Source: Saccharolobus islandicus REY15A (GTDB taxonomy: Archaea; Thermoproteota; Thermoprotei_A; Sulfolobales; Sulfolobaceae). From it: a stretch of 64,000 nucleotides of DNA. Positions 48,765-55,554 of the stretch are shown here, piece after piece. A program made the position numbers and the translations under genes. The stretch lies in assembly GCF_000189555.1 (NCBI RefSeq), contig NC_017276.1; one strand, given 5' to 3'. The notes under the pieces were generated by a model, which saw only the letters and a list, made by a program, of their open reading frames with translations, was not told where the DNA came from and ran no database searches. Within the stretch, counting starts at the first letter, position 1. Every line of letters starts with the position of its first letter.

Positions 48765-48817
48765 TGCTCAGCCGAAGGGCTATCGTCACAGATCGGCTGA
48801 AACACGGCTCATCACGC
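48765..48817 (-). ncRNA. Box C/D methylation-guide sRNA
   Basis: The minus strand reads GTGATGA-gccgtgtttcag-CCGA-tc-TGTGACGA-tagcccttcgg-CTGA: boxes C, D', C' and D with 11-12 nt guides, about 52 nt in total. Confidence 0.8.
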
Positions 48818-50041
48818 TACACTTAGTCTAACATCCTTGACCAAAGCATATGGGTAAATCCCTTGCATTGGGGCGTCCCACCATCTCACAGAGTACCTTT
48901 CTCTAGATAACTGTACTATATTCTTTAAAATCTTCTTCAAATTATCAGCTATCCTTACTCTGCCCACTACTCCAACAGGATTACCGTTCCTATAAACTAC
49001 AGTGGCATCTCTAGCAACTGTTGAGAAATCGCCCTCAGCATAGTTTTGGAATCTGGTATACCATACATTGTTTATGAAAACTACATTACCGGAAAGCAGT
49101 GATTCAAATCTAGTATCACCCTCCTTAACCTCTAAATTCCACGCTGTTGGGTATATCCATCCCGCATTACCGGTACTAGGCAATTTGAAGACGGTGGATA
49201 GTTCGTTATTTAGTAAAGGAGTTGTAAATACTCCATTTTCAATTATAGCCTTGTTATAGGTAAACGTACCTTCATCATCAAATCCCCACGAGTTAGGTCT
49301 ATCCTCCTTAGGAGTGTCTAATAAGGTAAACTTATCTGATCCCGCCTTTTCTCCAGGCTTCAACATCGACATCCCAGACATTATAGCGTAGCCGGAAGCC
49401 ATCCTTGCAACACTCTCCATTAAATTACCCATTACTAAAGGAGAGAGAATCACGTCATATTTACCTTCGGAAATCTCGTATTTGCCAGTAATTGATGCCA
49501 ACTCATTAGCTTTCTTTATACTATCCTTAACTTGAGATGGGGAGAAATTAGTAGAAGAAAAAGCCCATTGTCCGCTATGTTCCCTATTCTTAGCCCTAAA
49601 GTAACCGCTTATGCTTTGATTGTTTTCCGTTCCGTTGAATCCCTTAGATGTAACCAAGGATCTTTCCATATCATCTATTGATATTATACCGTAAAGGGGA
49701 TATTCCGACTCTATGAGAGATAAAAGAGGTGATAAATCGTCAAATAGTGATATAATGTTAGTGTTATTCCTAACCATTTTGTATTCTCTCTCATTTTTAC
49801 TCATAATAGGAAAGAAGTCTACTGGGGTTAGTTTAGGTTTCTCATTTAAATTACTTATCCTACCCAAGAACCCTTGGCTATCCTTCTTTAACGCTAGGAA
49901 ATAGTAACTGTTAGTCATTCTCTGTATTGTAGCTACCTTACTCTCAACTAGCTTAATGATTATCCTCCTTGTCTTCACTCTCAATAGTCCTACTTCTTCT
50001 CCCTTTACTTCTTGCACGTATTTTACCATTTCCTCATTCAT
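48812..50041 (-). CDS. tldE: TldE/PmbA-family protein
   Basis: FDDEG motif, no HExxH, overlaps tldD. Confidence 0.88.
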   Translation of the reverse strand: MNEEMVKYVQEVKGEEVGLLRVKTRRIIIKLVESKVATIQRMTNSYYFLALKKDSQGFLGRISNLNEKPKLTPVDFFPIMSKNEREYKMVRNNTNIISLFDDLSPLLSLIESEYPLYGIISIDDMERSLVTSKGFNGTENNQSISGYFRAKNREHSGQWAFSSTNFSPSQVKDSIKKANELASITGKYEISEGKYDVILSPLVMGNLMESVARMASGYAIMSGMSMLKPGEKAGSDKFTLLDTPKEDRPNSWGFDDEGTFTYNKAIIENGVFTTPLLNNELSTVFKLPSTGNAGWIYPTAWNLEVKEGDTRFESLLSGNVVFINNVWYTRFQNYAEGDFSTVARDATVVYRNGNPVGVVGRVRIADNLKKILKNIVQLSRERYSVRWWDAPMQGIYPYALVKDVRLSVA

Positions 50042-51410
50042 TTCCCATCACCTTAATTCTAACATTTCTCAATCTCATATTAGGCCCACCTAGCCAAACG
50101 GGTATACCTTGATCCGGATCACCCTTGCCACAAGTACCTGGATAAAATACTAAAGTATTATCAACTGCATCAACTGCCTTTAACAATTCAGTAGTCTTCC
50201 CTTGAAAAACCGGGAATAGTACTGGATCACCAATCTTTCCGTTCTTAATCTCATAAGCTTCCAACCCAACATATCGTTGACCTAGTCTCATATCATCAAT
50301 ATTCCATTCCATGTAACTCTTTATATAAACGCCTTCCTTGACGTCTTCCAAAAGCTCATCAAAGGTCATGTTACCAGGTTTAAAGAAAGTATTAGACATT
50401 CTAATTAAAGGTTCCCTATCGAAATTCGCAGCCCTGGCCGAGCCATTACTCTTAACGTTAAATTTACTACTACTAAACCTATTTTGTAAATATTCGTTAA
50501 CCTTACCATCCTTAATTAAGTATTTAGGTCTAGCTTCAACACCCTCATCGTCTATTATGTAATAACCGCCACTGTTCGGTATTGTAGGATCATCTATAAC
50601 AGTAACGACATCGCTACCTATCCTGTTATCCTTCAATTCAGCTAGATAACTCAAACCAGCTTGGGCGAATTCCCTACCCAAAACTCTATCGGCCTCAAAT
50701 GGATGCCCAACAGATTCATGAGCCATTATGCCTGTTAACATATTACTCAAAACTACATCAGTAGTCCGCTCACCAAAGCTCTTACCCTTAGCCAAGACCT
50801 CAGTAACAGATCTAACTTTATCCACTACGACCTCATTCAAATTCATCCTCTCTAATACTTCCAGCCCACCACTTCCTCCAAGTTCGTAAAATGCAGTAGC
50901 CGTCCTATTGTTCTCGTTAAGGACTAAATTCATTCCTACGTAAAGCCTAGGAACCCTTCCAACTATATGTGATCCATTAACTATGATCTCCTTTTCCTCA
51001 ATACTTTCGTCATAGAAAAATGAAACGCTCTTAAGTGAACGAAAGTCCTTTACAGCTTCATATAGGTTCTTAAAGAAGCTTATCTTCTCGTCAATTGACA
51101 TGAGATCAAAAGGTTTACCCTCTTTAACCTCATAACTACCCTCCTTAGGTTCAGTATTATCTAAACCGCTCTCCCACCCCTCTATTTTATACTCCTTGTT
51201 GCTGCTCAGTAGATCATTGGGATTATTTGATGAAGCAAAATATAACACGCCATCCTTGTAATACCTAACTGAATAGCCATCATCTGTAAACCTAAACGAT
51301 CCCATTAATCTGCCATTAAGAAAAGACATCCCAAACGTCGATACGATATGTCTTCTAACCTCCACGTAAGGGTATCTGAACTTATCGTAAAGAGATTGCA
51401 GATCTGTCAT
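50034..51410 (-). CDS. tldD: TldD-family metalloprotease
   Basis: HESVGHPFEADR, RMSNT and CGKG motifs. Confidence 0.93.
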   Translation of the reverse strand: MTDLQSLYDKFRYPYVEVRRHIVSTFGMSFLNGRLMGSFRFTDDGYSVRYYKDGVLYFASSNNPNDLLSSNKEYKIEGWESGLDNTEPKEGSYEVKEGKPFDLMSIDEKISFFKNLYEAVKDFRSLKSVSFFYDESIEEKEIIVNGSHIVGRVPRLYVGMNLVLNENNRTATAFYELGGSGGLEVLERMNLNEVVVDKVRSVTEVLAKGKSFGERTTDVVLSNMLTGIMAHESVGHPFEADRVLGREFAQAGLSYLAELKDNRIGSDVVTVIDDPTIPNSGGYYIIDDEGVEARPKYLIKDGKVNEYLQNRFSSSKFNVKSNGSARAANFDREPLIRMSNTFFKPGNMTFDELLEDVKEGVYIKSYMEWNIDDMRLGQRYVGLEAYEIKNGKIGDPVLFPVFQGKTTELLKAVDAVDNTLVFYPGTCGKGDPDQGIPVWLGGPNMRLRNVRIKVMGNE

Positions 51411-51548
51411 ATTATGATATGATTTTAGTCAAATAAAAAGATTGCTAACTCCAACTTCATCTTTATATTAATACTTTCTTCTATTCTGACTTTTTCCCCG
51501 CCTTTGATGCACGAAGCTTTCAGTAGTAAATATCTCACTACAGCATTT

Positions 51549-52613
51549 TTAGGCGTTTTTCCTTTCTTCCAATACTCTACTCAATTCCTTCTCAAAGTTC
51601 TCCTTTAGCTCTTTAAGTGTAATTGACCACTTATTGTCCTTTGTGAAGTGTTCGTAAGGTATTGAATACGTTCTAACTAAATCCCTTAAAGGTGTAATTG
51701 GGTGGACGTAAATTTCATATGAAACGTGATATGCTGAAGATAGTTTATTAATGAACTCCATGATATCAAGCAACATATGTTTTTGCCCAACAATAAATGC
51801 GTAAATCTTATCGTTATGCAAATAAGATATTCTTAAAAGCGTTGCAATCCTACTCAACTCCCTAACAATATCCTCACTAGTATCGTTTACGATCAACGAC
51901 ATTCTAAAGTCAGTCTTACCTAAATAAGTGTAAAACGCGTCAACTAAACCCTTACCAACAACGTGATTAAAATAATGATCTACCACTTCATCTGATGTTA
52001 CACCTATAGATTCTGCTATCTCATCCCACGACCTTAAAGGATTCTCTTGTTTCTTTCCAAGTGTATAAATGTCGATCCAGTCCGGCTTAAAACTATCAGT
52101 CAAATCAGGCAACTGAAACGGTTCTCTAGGCTTATCTAGTATAGCCCTTTCAAAAGTCAAAGTATCGAAATTAAAAGTTGAATAGTCAACTGGATAAACC
52201 TCCCTCCTATACTCCAGGTAAGTCTTATAATTACCAATTAATCCCCTCTCGCTCATCATTTCTAAAATTTGAACAAAATCCCACCTACCTTTAGGAAATA
52301 CAACATCCAGAATTATGGTATCGCTAGTCAAAACGTCCTTCAATGATGCAACCACCGTACCGTCAAGTAGATAATAAAAATCTAAAGGTTTAACCTTAAA
52401 ATTCCTTGTCAACTTAATAGTAGTATGAAAGAGCGATAATCCTAAAGAATCAAGTTTGGGAGACGAAATAACCAATACTTTAAGATTAGATAAGACATTC
52501 CTAACGTTTTCTATCCCAGTTAACTCACTCAGTAACTCGTGATTATGATCACCAAACCTCTGAACGTAATGCAATAATTTCGTAAGTTTTTGTATAACAG
52601 TAGAATCGATCAT
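51549..52613 (-). CDS. Putative transcription regulator with internal AsnC-like wHTH (tandem wHTH/effector-domain architecture inferred)
   Basis: DWIDIYTLGKKQENPLRSWDEIAESIGVTSDEVVDHY resembles an Lrp/AsnC HTH. The start at 52613 sits about 26 bp from a TATA-like TTTTATAT. Confidence 0.55.
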   Translation of the reverse strand: MIDSTVIQKLTKLLHYVQRFGDHNHELLSELTGIENVRNVLSNLKVLVISSPKLDSLGLSLFHTTIKLTRNFKVKPLDFYYLLDGTVVASLKDVLTSDTIILDVVFPKGRWDFVQILEMMSERGLIGNYKTYLEYRREVYPVDYSTFNFDTLTFERAILDKPREPFQLPDLTDSFKPDWIDIYTLGKKQENPLRSWDEIAESIGVTSDEVVDHYFNHVVGKGLVDAFYTYLGKTDFRMSLIVNDTSEDIVRELSRIATLLRISYLHNDKIYAFIVGQKHMLLDIMEFINKLSSAYHVSYEIYVHPITPLRDLVRTYSIPYEHFTKDNKWSITLKELKENFEKELSRVLEERKNA

Positions 52614-52683
52614 ACTCAACATAATAAGTAGTGAGAACATATAAAAATAGTATCTTCAAAATTCTAAAAAGAATTTAACGTAT

Positions 52684-52824
52684 CTAAACAGTACCTGGTG
52701 CTATTGATTCTCCAGCGTGTGTTACATGTAGTGCTGCAAGGATTAATGGTAGGGAAGCTGCTGCTATTATTATTGCATACCTTACTACTTGACTTGAGGC
52801 TAACGTGTACATGTTTACTCTCAT
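52684..52824 (-). CDS. 46-aa signal-peptide-like small ORF (not in ORF track)
   Basis: MRVNMYTLASSQVVRYAIIIAAASLPLILAALHVTHAGESIAPGTV*. Has basic, hydrophobic and T-H-A cleavage regions, an upstream TATA-like ATATTTAT and a downstream T-rich tract. Confidence 0.65.
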   Translation of the reverse strand: MRVNMYTLASSQVVRYAIIIAAASLPLILAALHVTHAGESIAPGTV

Positions 52825-53131
52825 TTTTGGTCAATAGTCACAAACGTGAGGGCTCCAATAAATATGAGTATTTGAATGAAATAGATTTATTGGAAATTGA
52901 GAGTTTACACTAAAATCAAAATAATAAAAAGTTTATAGCTTTAAGATCTCACATATAAGCAAATAGTTAACGAGAAACTGAACTATGAGGCCGGTATTAT
53001 GGAAAACAAGAATGGCTCACAGAAAAATTTTAAAAAATAATTTTTGTTGTAAAATCTCTATCTTAAATTATTAATTTCGCTTTTTGGAATTTAAATTTTT
53101 CCTTTTATACATAAGCTTCATCGTCTTATGA

Positions 53132-53929
53132 TTAAACCTTTATTACTCTTCTCGTCATTGGTATCTCTTTAACTAACTCTATAGGCTTTTGTTCTATTAT
53201 ATCGACCTCGTACACTGCAGTAGTGGAGTAAATTACCTTTCTCTCATCCTTTTTAGCTATTGCTGTTACACCAAATGTGGGTCTTGGCAACTTTACACTT
53301 ACCTTATCCCAACTAATCCCATTATCTCTAGAAATTATTAAGGGCTCTTGACTCATTATATGGGCTACAACTATTCTTCCTAGATCTTCCAATCCGTGAG
53401 CGTAACCACCTATCACTTTATTAAAACTTTTCATATCTATAGTTTTGTAAATTCCATTCGCTGTTGCTATTAATAGATTCTCACCACTAACTAAAAGGTT
53501 ATGCATGTCTGCGAAGAAGTCTATGGGCTTTAATTCACTTATGGACTTTCCCACTAATAAGTTCCCTTCTTCAACAGTGGCAACTATGTAATCTTTAAAT
53601 AGTGCGAAATCTGTTATGTGTGCTGGGCCATAGGGAAATTCCCAGCCTAATTTTTCTGCCTCTTTTGTTAAATTTAGTATTTCTTTTACTTTTCTGTCCC
53701 TGATTTCATATATTTTAGGTCCCTCAATTGAAGCGTAGATTGTATTGTCATACTCCCATAATCTCCAACATCCTTCGTTTATTATTGCCTCGTTGTTTTT
53801 CGAGATTACTCCTTTCTCAGATGAGCAAATATAGGGTAAGACCACATCGTTAACCTCATAGCCTTCTGTTAATTTCTCCAATTCCTTGTCTAACTTGTAT
53901 AATCCATTGTTAGTTGCAATGAGATACAT
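53132..53929 (-). CDS. Beta-propeller-like protein (BNR/Asp-box-like motif)
   Basis: Repeated LLIATANGIYK-type blades and an SRDNGISW Asp-box. Confidence 0.6.
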   Translation of the reverse strand: MYLIATNNGLYKLDKELEKLTEGYEVNDVVLPYICSSEKGVISKNNEAIINEGCWRLWEYDNTIYASIEGPKIYEIRDRKVKEILNLTKEAEKLGWEFPYGPAHITDFALFKDYIVATVEEGNLLVGKSISELKPIDFFADMHNLLVSGENLLIATANGIYKTIDMKSFNKVIGGYAHGLEDLGRIVVAHIMSQEPLIISRDNGISWDKVSVKLPRPTFGVTAIAKKDERKVIYSTTAVYEVDIIEQKPIELVKEIPMTRRVIKV

Positions 53930-54018: not shown

Positions 54019-55554
54019 GTGAACTACCCCGCCCTTACCCGGTAGACCCAAAATCACCTCCTTAAAAATAAATCTATAGTATAAATAAGCGTTTCAATTA
54101 CATTAAATGTAAAATTCTCTGGATTGAATAAATCAGGAAATAAAAGAATTAATAATAATCTAAACTCCTCTCTCCCCACCTCCCCCTTGAATATGGTATA
54201 TAAGGAGTAGAGTACAAGGGCCAGCACGAAGATCAACGTGCGGAAAACAAACTTAGTAGAACTAGTAAATGGAAGAAAAGCCTTAATGTTCCTATAAGAG
54301 GTCTCTATGGGACCTCTTACCTTATTGTACAAATCCAACACTTCCCTCTTGGATAGGTCTAGGTTAGTAGCCCTAGCGAAGTAAACAAGACTCTTCTTCT
54401 TTCTCCCCACTTTTTCCTTGCTGTACACGAGAAGCCTGAACTTGACCTGCTCATCCCTCCTATGCCTCTTACTATTAGTTGTGTAATCCCCGTCAAACTC
54501 CTCGTACACCTTCACGTCCCCAACCGGAACAGCAATTATGTACTTAAACTGTGAAATGAAGTTGAGCACGTCAACAGTATAGAAACCAGCGTCAAGAGTT
54601 ATCAACCTTATCTTGAATCCCATTACTTGTTCAACAAGAGCCTTCACTATCTCGTCCTTAGTCATACCGTTCACTTGCGGAATAAAGGCAAGTAAAAGCA
54701 CTTTCCCCTTATACTTGGTTGTTGCAGTTGCGTAGTTCCACGAGTTTCCTTTTTCAGAGCTCCCGAGCCCTTTCACTGGTTTCCCATACCACGTCTTGGT
54801 TGTCCAGTCTATTGAGAGATCTATCTCATTCACTCCCTTTAATATCTCCAAGGATATTTTCCTAGCTCTTTCCAATAGCTTTTCAGTCACTTCCATCCCT
54901 TGTTTCTCTACGTAATTCCTCACGGTCTGTGGGGATACGTCATACGCTCTGGACTTGTTCTCTACTGAATCGTTCCACAAACACGCGGAGATGAGAGTTT
55001 TCGCTACCTCCTCTACCTTTTCCCCTTGGAAGTTTAGCATGGAAAGTAATTTATATCCTATTTGTTGAATTTTGGTGAGGGAGACTTGGTGTTACCATCT
55101 TCCTATGTCACGTGGTAATACTCCATCTCCCTCACCTTAAACCCTTTCTTCAATTGAATTCTTTATACTCTTATAAATTTCTTTATCTTTTATAAATTCG
55201 ATATTATCCTACCAGAAATATTTTTTCTAATATGATTTTGGGTCTACCGTTACGGACAGGGCATCTCCACCTCACGATGGGGATTTCCTGCTTCTCAGAG
55301 CAACCTCGATCCCCCTTCACCCACAGCGGAGGTTCCATCGAACGGAACCGTTCTGTAATGCCCCGTGTGGAAGAGGGGTTACGGAGGGTTGCTCTCCACA
55401 GGCGTAAGTTCCCCCAGTCCCAAGGGTACGGCCCAGCTCTTACAGCCGAGGCCTAAGAATTATCTATTTTTTGCAATAAAAAGGTTTCTATAAGGGGGCT
55501 ATTCATCCCCTACCTTACGGAAGGGGACTTTCGCCCCCTTAACCCCTAATTAAG
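54019..55554 (-). mobile_element. Second SMN1-type element, split by an ISC1225-type IS in its right-end hairpin
   Basis: 54019-54038 plus 55254-55554 are the reverse complement of 22612-22932. It follows TTTAA on the minus strand. Confidence 0.9.
54040..55249 (-). mobile_element. ISC1225-like IS, second copy (1210 bp), with lesions
   Basis: Same TIRs as the copy at 42019. TTAC duplication with one extra C on the left. A 5-bp deletion near the transposase start and a 6-bp in-frame deletion relative to that copy. Confidence 0.92.

Follow-up and report, generated by a model that had tools for sequence, protein, structure and literature searches.

The stretch of DNA analysed here (referred to as the window) comprises 64,000 nucleotides (nt) of Saccharolobus islandicus REY15A (contig NC_017276.1). 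It includes two neighbouring genes, a small open reading frame (sORF) and the large gene that follows it (the partner), which together form an autonomous, conserved and uncharacterised chromosomal two-gene module:

52684..52824, minus strand: sORF, specifying a 46-amino-acid (aa) putative pre-peptide or micro-membrane protein (from its sequence, orthologues, substitution ratios and public annotations)
51549..52613, minus strand: partner gene, specifying a 354-aa cytoplasmic protein with a fused-dimer Lrp/AsnC fold (from AlphaFold, Foldseek and the Pfam matches of its relatives)

The sORF has 46 codons and encodes MRVNMYTLASSQVVRYAIIIAAASLPLILAALHVTHAGESIAPGTV. Its end is separated from the start of the partner gene by 70 nt, and both genes are co-oriented. 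A preliminary description of the locus had pointed to this ORF, with a TATA-like box and a downstream T-tract, and all of these are present in the sequence. It had also considered the ORF to be unannotated. This must be corrected: the sORF is already included in public genomes as a hypothetical protein of 46 or 52 aa (for example, YG5714_1072 and WP_016730778). In the window, an in-frame TGA (52833-52831) rules out the upstream extension to 52 aa, and the 46-aa form is therefore the conserved one. An overlapping alternative frame of 56 aa (52664-52834) was rejected, its conservation being limited to the closest strains, as was an RNA explanation for the region, since Rfam gave no match within 51300-53200.

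The close homologues of the partner protein make up only 17 clusters, all from Sulfolobaceae. Their genomic contexts were collected protein by protein and the upstream DNA was then scanned for sORFs. Taking as the sample those Sulfolobaceae loci that include a full-length partner gene together with upstream DNA (18 loci), an orthologue of 45-49 aa was found in 16, co-oriented and approximately 70 nt upstream. These orthologues are from S. islandicus, S. solfataricus, S. tengchongensis, S. caldissimus and Sulfolobus spp. E5-1-F and B1, with others from several metagenome-assembled genomes (MAGs; Saccharolobus among them), metagenomes, Metallosphaera javensis and a second lineage (L022; approximately 31% identity). 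The peptide consensus is MKVNMYTLASSQVVRxAIIItAASLPLILAALH[IV]xHA[GE]xSxxPxTx. The preliminary description had anticipated that a scan upstream of the homologues might reveal a recurring sORF with a conserved cleavage junction and variable C-termini, and had named coding constraint as a test. The scan did reveal this pattern, the conserved junction being xH[AG]|[GE], and constraint is clear: in five phylogenetically independent pairs, the ratio of nonsynonymous to synonymous differences per site (pN/pS) is 0.24 for codons 1-37 (the head), indicating purifying selection. For the nine codons of the tail it is 1.17, and the nonsynonymous to synonymous ratio in these same pairs differs between head and tail (Fisher p=0.003). 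Since the sORF recurs upstream of the partner gene in Saccharolobus, Sulfolobus and Metallosphaera, and since its frame is under purifying selection, it is a real gene, far beyond chance occurrence.

The product has the n-h-c layout of a signal peptide, as had been noted previously. The n-region (M1-R15) includes 15 residues, two of them basic. It is followed by a hydrophobic core, 16 residues long (19 if taken as Y16-V34), and a junction, H33-V-T-H36-A37, with small residues at positions -3 and -1. A cut after T-H-A would leave the nine-residue tail G38-V46 (GESIAPGTV). Tails are acidic or neutral, and more than 20 variants occur on identical or near-identical heads (for example, GESIAPGTV, EESIAPGTV, GESILPGTG, EESILPVTE, GESGLPITD, GISKAPGTY, GESKLPGTG and GLSTDPATG). 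Their length is nearly always nine residues and S40, P43 and T45 are fixed, giving the consensus [GE]-x-S-x-x-P-x-T-x. Between genera, the best-conserved element is the junction, H-[AG]-[GE]-x-S. The positive-inside rule predicts an N-in/C-out topology for the peptide, and from the layout the product would adopt this topology and may be cleaved and exported.

A separate TATA box precedes each gene and a conserved T-run lies between them. The regulatory features are:

52854..52894, minus strand: sORF promoter region and candidate operator, with the TATA-like sequence ATATTTAT inside a perfect 10-nt inverted repeat
52659..52676, minus strand: palindrome AAATTCT-TTTT-AGAATTT (7-nt inverted repeat) with a T5 tract, 8-25 nt after the sORF stop
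52639..52647, minus strand: TATA box of the partner gene, TTTTTATAT, approximately 30 nt 5' of its ATG

The TATA-like sequence of the sORF (52865-52858) is located approximately 37 nt 5' of the ATG and is overlapped by the inverted repeat TCCAATAAAT / ATTTATTGGA (arms 52854-52863 and 52885-52894, with a 21-nt spacer), a candidate operator. A GTTTAT or ATTTAT is kept approximately 35 nt upstream of the sORF ATG in 8/8 orthologous loci. Downstream, the T5 tract (52670-52666) lies 14 nt past the sORF stop and the position of this T-run is conserved in each of the eight aligned loci. The palindrome, the only AAATTCT-N4-AGAATTT site in the window, is likely to be a terminator for the sORF, a regulatory site, or both. 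The TATA box of the partner gene would imply a separate, near-leaderless transcript for this gene; conservation of the intergenic stretch which carries it exceeds that of the coding DNA on either side. A scan for sigma-70 promoters and hairpin terminators is uninformative for archaea.

Contexts were also obtained for four distant relatives of the partner (P0086, P0174, P0184 and P0190, with Nitrososphaeria and Thermoproteota MAGs among them). In all four, a signal-peptide-like ORF of 38-79 aa, in convergent orientation, is found directly after the stop of the large gene. In the products of these small ORFs, a basic N-terminus precedes a hydrophobic core, which is followed by an AxA-like site and a tail rich in Pro and Gly (GDP/Pro-rich). 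The peptides are MFSMPKNEKLRLLMLVALLLLAAAGIVPQGDPVGPWPL, MVKMSKAAKIRMLIIAVTLLASALGVLPLGDPIGPLPI and MNKMDAKWKIRLIFAAIVVGAFVLAYFGVIPAIFAGPINSPAPL, together with one protein of 79 aa. The 79-aa convergent gene overlaps the stop of the distant partner homologue (L030:4083-4322, minus strand; also in L031 and L032), and its product has a signal-peptide-like N-terminus (…APSFA|ADP…) and a tail with two copies of GDPIEDDPNPVPD. It looks like a multi-copy pro-peptide, and the duplicated motif suggests that function resides in the extracytoplasmic tail. The background of such ORFs at the distant loci is 0.18 per kb, even with these four included, and their presence at four of four loci is therefore not a chance result. 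With a peptide gene adjoining the partner in each of the four distant relatives examined, the pairing is old and extends across distantly related archaea. Gene order is not the same in the two groups: the sORF is upstream and co-oriented in Sulfolobaceae, whereas it is downstream and convergent in the distant relatives. That the association persists despite this change argues for functional coupling.

Neither the 354-aa nor the 46-aa protein gave a significant match in Pfam, in NCBIfam or in a sequence-profile search of the PDB. A profile search of 1.84 billion representatives identified 87 relatives of the partner (330-400 aa), in Acidianus, Metallosphaera, Sulfolobales HS-7 and Nitrososphaeria and Thermoproteota MAGs. 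Several of these are annotated in their source files as Lrp/AsnC regulators, several match the Pfam HTH_24 and HTH_AsnC-type families (PF13404, PF13412) at the second helix-turn-helix (HTH), and several have an ArsR/MarR/TrmB-type HTH match at the first. The preliminary description had mentioned an AsnC-like HTH, and both the relatives and the fold support this, although the window protein itself is below the level of Pfam detection.

The AlphaFold model of the partner, built with a 39-sequence alignment, has a predicted local distance difference test score (pLDDT) of 92.6 and a predicted template modelling score (pTM) of 0.90. It replaces an earlier, mediocre model (17 close homologues, pLDDT 66), which gave the same Foldseek answer. 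The model includes a first winged HTH (wHTH1, approximately residues 1-52), a first RAM-like domain (approximately 59-139), wHTH2 (approximately 179-230), a second RAM-like domain (approximately 236-305) and a C-terminal helix (333-353). RAM-like domain 1 is ferredoxin-like (strands, E, and helices, H: E59-68/H76-82/E87-92/E99-107/H112-122/E126-139) and RAM-like domain 2 has the order E236-242/H247-253/E259-276/H278-295/E299-305. In Foldseek comparisons with the PDB, these domains match Lrp, ACT-like and ferredoxin-like folds. The partner residues G21, N24, D178, D181, Q189, H213, H217, P319 and W329 are invariant.

Compared with the Lrp/AsnC proteins (feast/famine regulatory proteins such as S. 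tokodaii ST1022/Grp, E. coli Lrp and AsnC, and P. horikoshii PH0061), each half of the partner superposes on a single regulator, with a wHTH and a beta-alpha-beta-beta-alpha-beta RAM domain (TMt 0.56-0.60), and the partner family has their D-x-x-D...Q HTH signature (D178, D181 and Q189). It differs in that two units are fused in a single 354-aa chain, whereas Lrp/AsnC units of approximately 150 aa form dimers or octamers, and in its pairing with a mini-peptide gene, which is no known feature of Lrp. Two loci (L020:1585-2613 and L021:2069-3106) encode the partner from approximately residue 157 onwards (its C-terminal half), joined in frame to an N-terminal segment of unrelated sequence; each looks like a pseudogene of the module, or like what a deletion has left of it.

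Comparison of the window with the S. islandicus locus L003 gave the following values (dS, synonymous divergence):

Flanking genes: protein identity 98-99.5%, dS 0.02-0.07
sORF: protein identity 91%
Partner: protein identity 88%, dS 0.36

The pair is a polymorphic island within S. islandicus. Divergence of the partner is highest in its hypervariable segment (residues 31-90), which covers the recognition helix of HTH1, the wing and the first RAM strand. The ratio of nonsynonymous to synonymous divergence (omega) of the partner is approximately 0.18 in this comparison, which indicates exchange or maintenance of old alleles, with no adaptive burst. The pattern resembles that of pherotype loci, a likeness which would not in itself prove signalling.

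That the sORF and its partner are a real, functionally coupled pair is, in our judgement, very probable. For the nature of the coupling, the single most likely mechanism is extracellular peptide signalling by a cassette of an exported peptide and an Lrp-like sensor or regulator, a choice that we make only tentatively. The 46-aa product, by virtue of its basic n-region, its hydrophobic core of 16-19 residues and its small-x-small junction (T/V-H-A|G/E), would be inserted N-in/C-out, placing the variable nine-residue tail of fixed length on the outer face. The tail may then be freed by signal peptidase, with cleavage at H-A|G, or it may remain in place as a stub. The partner, a predicted cytoplasmic pseudo-dimer of two Lrp/AsnC units (each a wHTH with a RAM domain), would be the intracellular component. 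Once exported, the peptide would serve as a signal or marker, which the Lrp-like protein would sense or whose production it would control via the promoter-proximal inverted repeats. Binding between peptide and partner, and of the partner to DNA, may form part of such a mechanism.

A cassette of this kind would work like the pairs of the RRNPP systems (PlcR/PapR, Rap/Phr, Rgg/SHP and AimR/AimP of Firmicutes and their phages), made from unrelated parts. Both have a gene for a 40-50-aa pre-peptide with the layout of a signal sequence beside that of a cytoplasmic HTH protein, a functional register set from the C-terminus, a peptide end that is variable within species and a locally polymorphic cassette. 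The putative pro-peptide features of the sequence here are the n-h-c layout, the conserved H-[AG]|[GE] junction and the variable nine-residue tail. Membership of the RRNPP group, which the preliminary description had raised as a parallel, does not hold: the partner has neither a TPR domain (in Pfam or in the model) nor an XRE-type HTH and has instead a fused double Lrp/AsnC fold. The host, in addition, is an archaeon, and there is no linked Opp-type importer and no detected covariation of peptide and receptor. Without a TPR receptor, the analogy is functional only.

A number of observations weigh against peptide signalling. The hydrophobic segment (AASLPLILAALH) and Q12 in the n-region show more conservation than export alone would call for, which fits a membrane-resident protein, and a tail pN/pS near 1 is also expected from relaxed constraint. 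The preliminary description had expected the tail to vary together with the regulator. There is no such covariation with partner residues 31-90 (partial Mantel r 0.04, p 0.38; 18 pairs), and very different partners carry near-identical tails. For residues 233-354 the correlation is borderline (r 0.20, p 0.03 before any correction for the five tests) and is not counted as evidence. A single anecdotal case runs counter to this lack of covariation: L017 and L018 differ in their tails and all four of the substitutions between their partners fall in residues 31-90. No exporter, importer or protease is consistently linked to the module at the loci examined, and the top structural match of the partner is an enzyme, siroheme decarboxylase NirDL, and not a regulator. 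Two paralogues of the partner gene (L010:4001-5053 and a second copy in L013, 4001-5059) have no sORF either upstream or downstream.

Electrostatics also count against this mechanism. Sulfolobaceae partners are uniformly acidic (isoelectric point, pI, 5.3-6.2), whereas those of the distant branch are mostly basic (pI approximately 9). Both recognition helices of the Sulfolobaceae branch (ENVRNVLSNLK and DEVVDHYFNHV in the window protein) have lost basic residues and have a net charge of 0 to -3, compared with the Arg-rich helices of Lrp; those of the distant branch keep them (ETVRYKIRRQL and KTVRYHYMEHILRRG). DNA binding by the window protein should therefore not be assumed.

Two further points concern these same genes. 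The switch to acidic partners coincides with the loss of Arg and Lys from both recognition helices and with the changed position of the peptide gene. The sORF-less copies in L010 and L013 are each followed by a convergent gene with a Csa3_N domain, and that in L013 is directly after a complete sORF-plus-partner module.

Close behind peptide signalling stands another possible explanation, in which the sORF product is a membrane-resident micro-protein, an uncleaved single-pass protein with N-in/C-out topology. Its conserved cytoplasmic N-terminus (MKVNMYTLASSQVVR) or its transmembrane helix would bind, tether or modulate the acidic Lrp-fold protein, as bacterial small membrane proteins do with sensors and regulators, and the outer tail would be a weakly constrained stub. 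The strong conservation of the hydrophobic core, Q12, H33 and H36 would be readily explained, as would the low pN/pS of the head. The 19 residues of Y16-V34 are enough for a transmembrane helix, an n-region pattern (MxKMxKxxK[IL]R) is also kept in the distant branch, and a basic n-region would suit an acidic partner. The absence of tail-partner covariation and the tail pN/pS are compatible with this too. However, Metallosphaera, L022, L027 and L028 have cores of only 14-16 residues, rather short for a helix that is to span the membrane stably, and a small-x-small site ends the core in every lineage. The fixed length of the tail and its fixed S, P and T positions mean that it is not unconstrained, and its motif is duplicated in L030. 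Small membrane proteins of the MgrB-PhoQ type and type I toxins (Hok, TisB) provide a comparison: they share the size (38-49 aa), the single hydrophobic helix with short polar ends and the individual promoter. They differ in that no antisense RNA or sensor kinase is seen here, in the soluble Lrp-fold partner, and in the AxA-like junction and tail of fixed length, which suggest processing.

It is less likely that the pair consists of a regulator and an effector, with the Lrp-like protein controlling a membrane-active or secreted peptide (bacteriocin-, holin- or toxin-like) that has no feedback on it, and with diversification resulting from antagonism between strains. The separate promoters and the inverted repeats at the sORF promoter would fit such an arrangement, as would a size and layout akin to those of small hydrophobic toxins, the polymorphic island within a single species and the variable contexts, in some genomes near toxin-antitoxin, HEPN/NTase and Csa3 genes. 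Against it, the loci show neither an immunity gene nor an exporter or antisense RNA, PADLOC gives only generic HTH matches, the Sulfolobaceae partner has poor electrostatics for DNA binding and plasmids, phages and viral contigs yielded no homologues. This distribution, together with the generic nature of the HTH matches in both PADLOC and PHROGs, also led us to reject an origin of the module in a mobile element or in defence.

More improbable still is an enzyme or cofactor pair. Here, the partner would be a NirDL/AhbAB-like enzyme that does not bind DNA, or a tetrapyrrole or metal binder, and the peptide, with two conserved histidines at the outer membrane boundary, would be its membrane partner or substrate. 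This would account for the top Foldseek matches, to NirDL (4czc and 4ch7; E 3e-10 and 7e-10; TM 0.47-0.58), which are accompanied by matches to chlorite-dismutase-like barrels, for the invariant H213 and H217 and several clade-invariant histidines of the partner, for H33 and H36, which are invariant in Sulfolobaceae peptides, and for the acidity of the partner. NirDL/AhbA-AhbB (PDB 4ch7, 4czc and 4czd), which form a fused or heterodimeric Lrp/AsnC-like pseudo-dimer, are in fact the best full-length match. The identity is only 12-13%, however, there is no NirD/AhbA family match in Pfam or NCBIfam, and no haem d1 or ahb genes are found nearby at the examined loci, where unrelated neighbours differ from genome to genome. 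The partner family, moreover, occurs only in Thermoproteota lineages, in association with a peptide gene. H213 and H217 lie in an HTH recognition helix, where Lrp has arginines. The spacing of the peptide histidines varies by genus (HxxH or HxxxxH) and the distant-branch peptides have no histidine at all, which makes metal or haem binding by HxxH unlikely as the general function of the peptide.

The preliminary description had also connected the peptide with the two genes which follow the module, tldD and tldE:

50034-51410, minus strand: TldD, co-oriented with the module (Pfam PmbA_TldD, E 2e-52)
48812-50041, minus strand: TldE, also co-oriented (Pfam PmbA_TldD, E 5e-45)

A tblastn analysis of all loci with TldD and TldE shows that these genes adjoin the module only in the synteny block of S. 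islandicus (the window included), S. solfataricus and Sulfolobus sp. E5-1-F. In the other lineages, neither was found within 2.5-4 kb of the module (L001, L002, L007, L008, L011, L013, L016-18, L022 and L027-30). The proposed connection thus fails and tldD and tldE are unrelated, incidental neighbours. The idea that TldDE trims or clears the peptide, in the manner of the microcin B17 leader, is largely refuted by this missing linkage and retains very little credibility: apart from the adjacency, it has in its favour that the S. solfataricus TldD, Sso0660, is an active, cytoplasmic zinc protease (PMC3497727), but the tail is predicted to face outward, tldD is located 138 nt beyond the stop of the partner gene, the module is polymorphic beside tldDE genes with 95-99% conservation, and, in contrast to peptides of the microcin B17 type matured by TldD/E, no McbBCD-like genes occur at any examined locus.

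Two other features were identified in the vicinity. Relative to the L003 locus, which is otherwise 98.6-98.8% identical, the window has an insertion of 1,536 bp (54019-55554). This carries an insertion sequence with a DDE transposase gene (54054-55040, minus strand; Pfam DDE_Tnp_1 and DUF4322) and imperfect terminal inverted repeats of 36 nt (54040-54075 and 55214-55249). The remainder includes approximately 300 nt of GC-rich DNA (58-60% GC, 55250-55450) with no Rfam match. The gap between tldE and an acyl-CoA dehydrogenase gene includes the C/D-box small RNA sR9 (48766-48819, minus strand; Rfam RF01312, 43 bits).

Small archaeal proteins are largely uncharacterised. Literature searches revealed no description of this gene pair and none of peptide-based signalling in Archaea, and we know of no such signalling ourselves. 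At its widest, the proposal would be of an ancient communication or self-marking system of the Thermoproteota, in which Sec-exported pre-peptides of 38-79 aa would yield C-terminal peptides of 9-15 residues, the RAM-like domains of the fused-dimer Lrp/AsnC-type protein would sense them and S. islandicus populations would carry diversified, pherotype-like alleles. We regard this extension as doubtful. If true, it would represent the first peptide pheromone-receptor system in Archaea, with a receptor fold unrelated to that of RRNPP. What began as a guess from a single window is now a defined and conserved gene pair, from which a misleading link to TldD/E has been removed. S. islandicus is genetically tractable, and the pair provides a candidate processing site, a natural allelic series of tails, candidate operators and a high-confidence model of the partner. 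Whichever explanation is adopted, the pairing places an orphan family, the fused Lrp/AsnC proteins of Sulfolobales and of Nitrososphaeria and other Thermoproteota MAGs, in a biological context.

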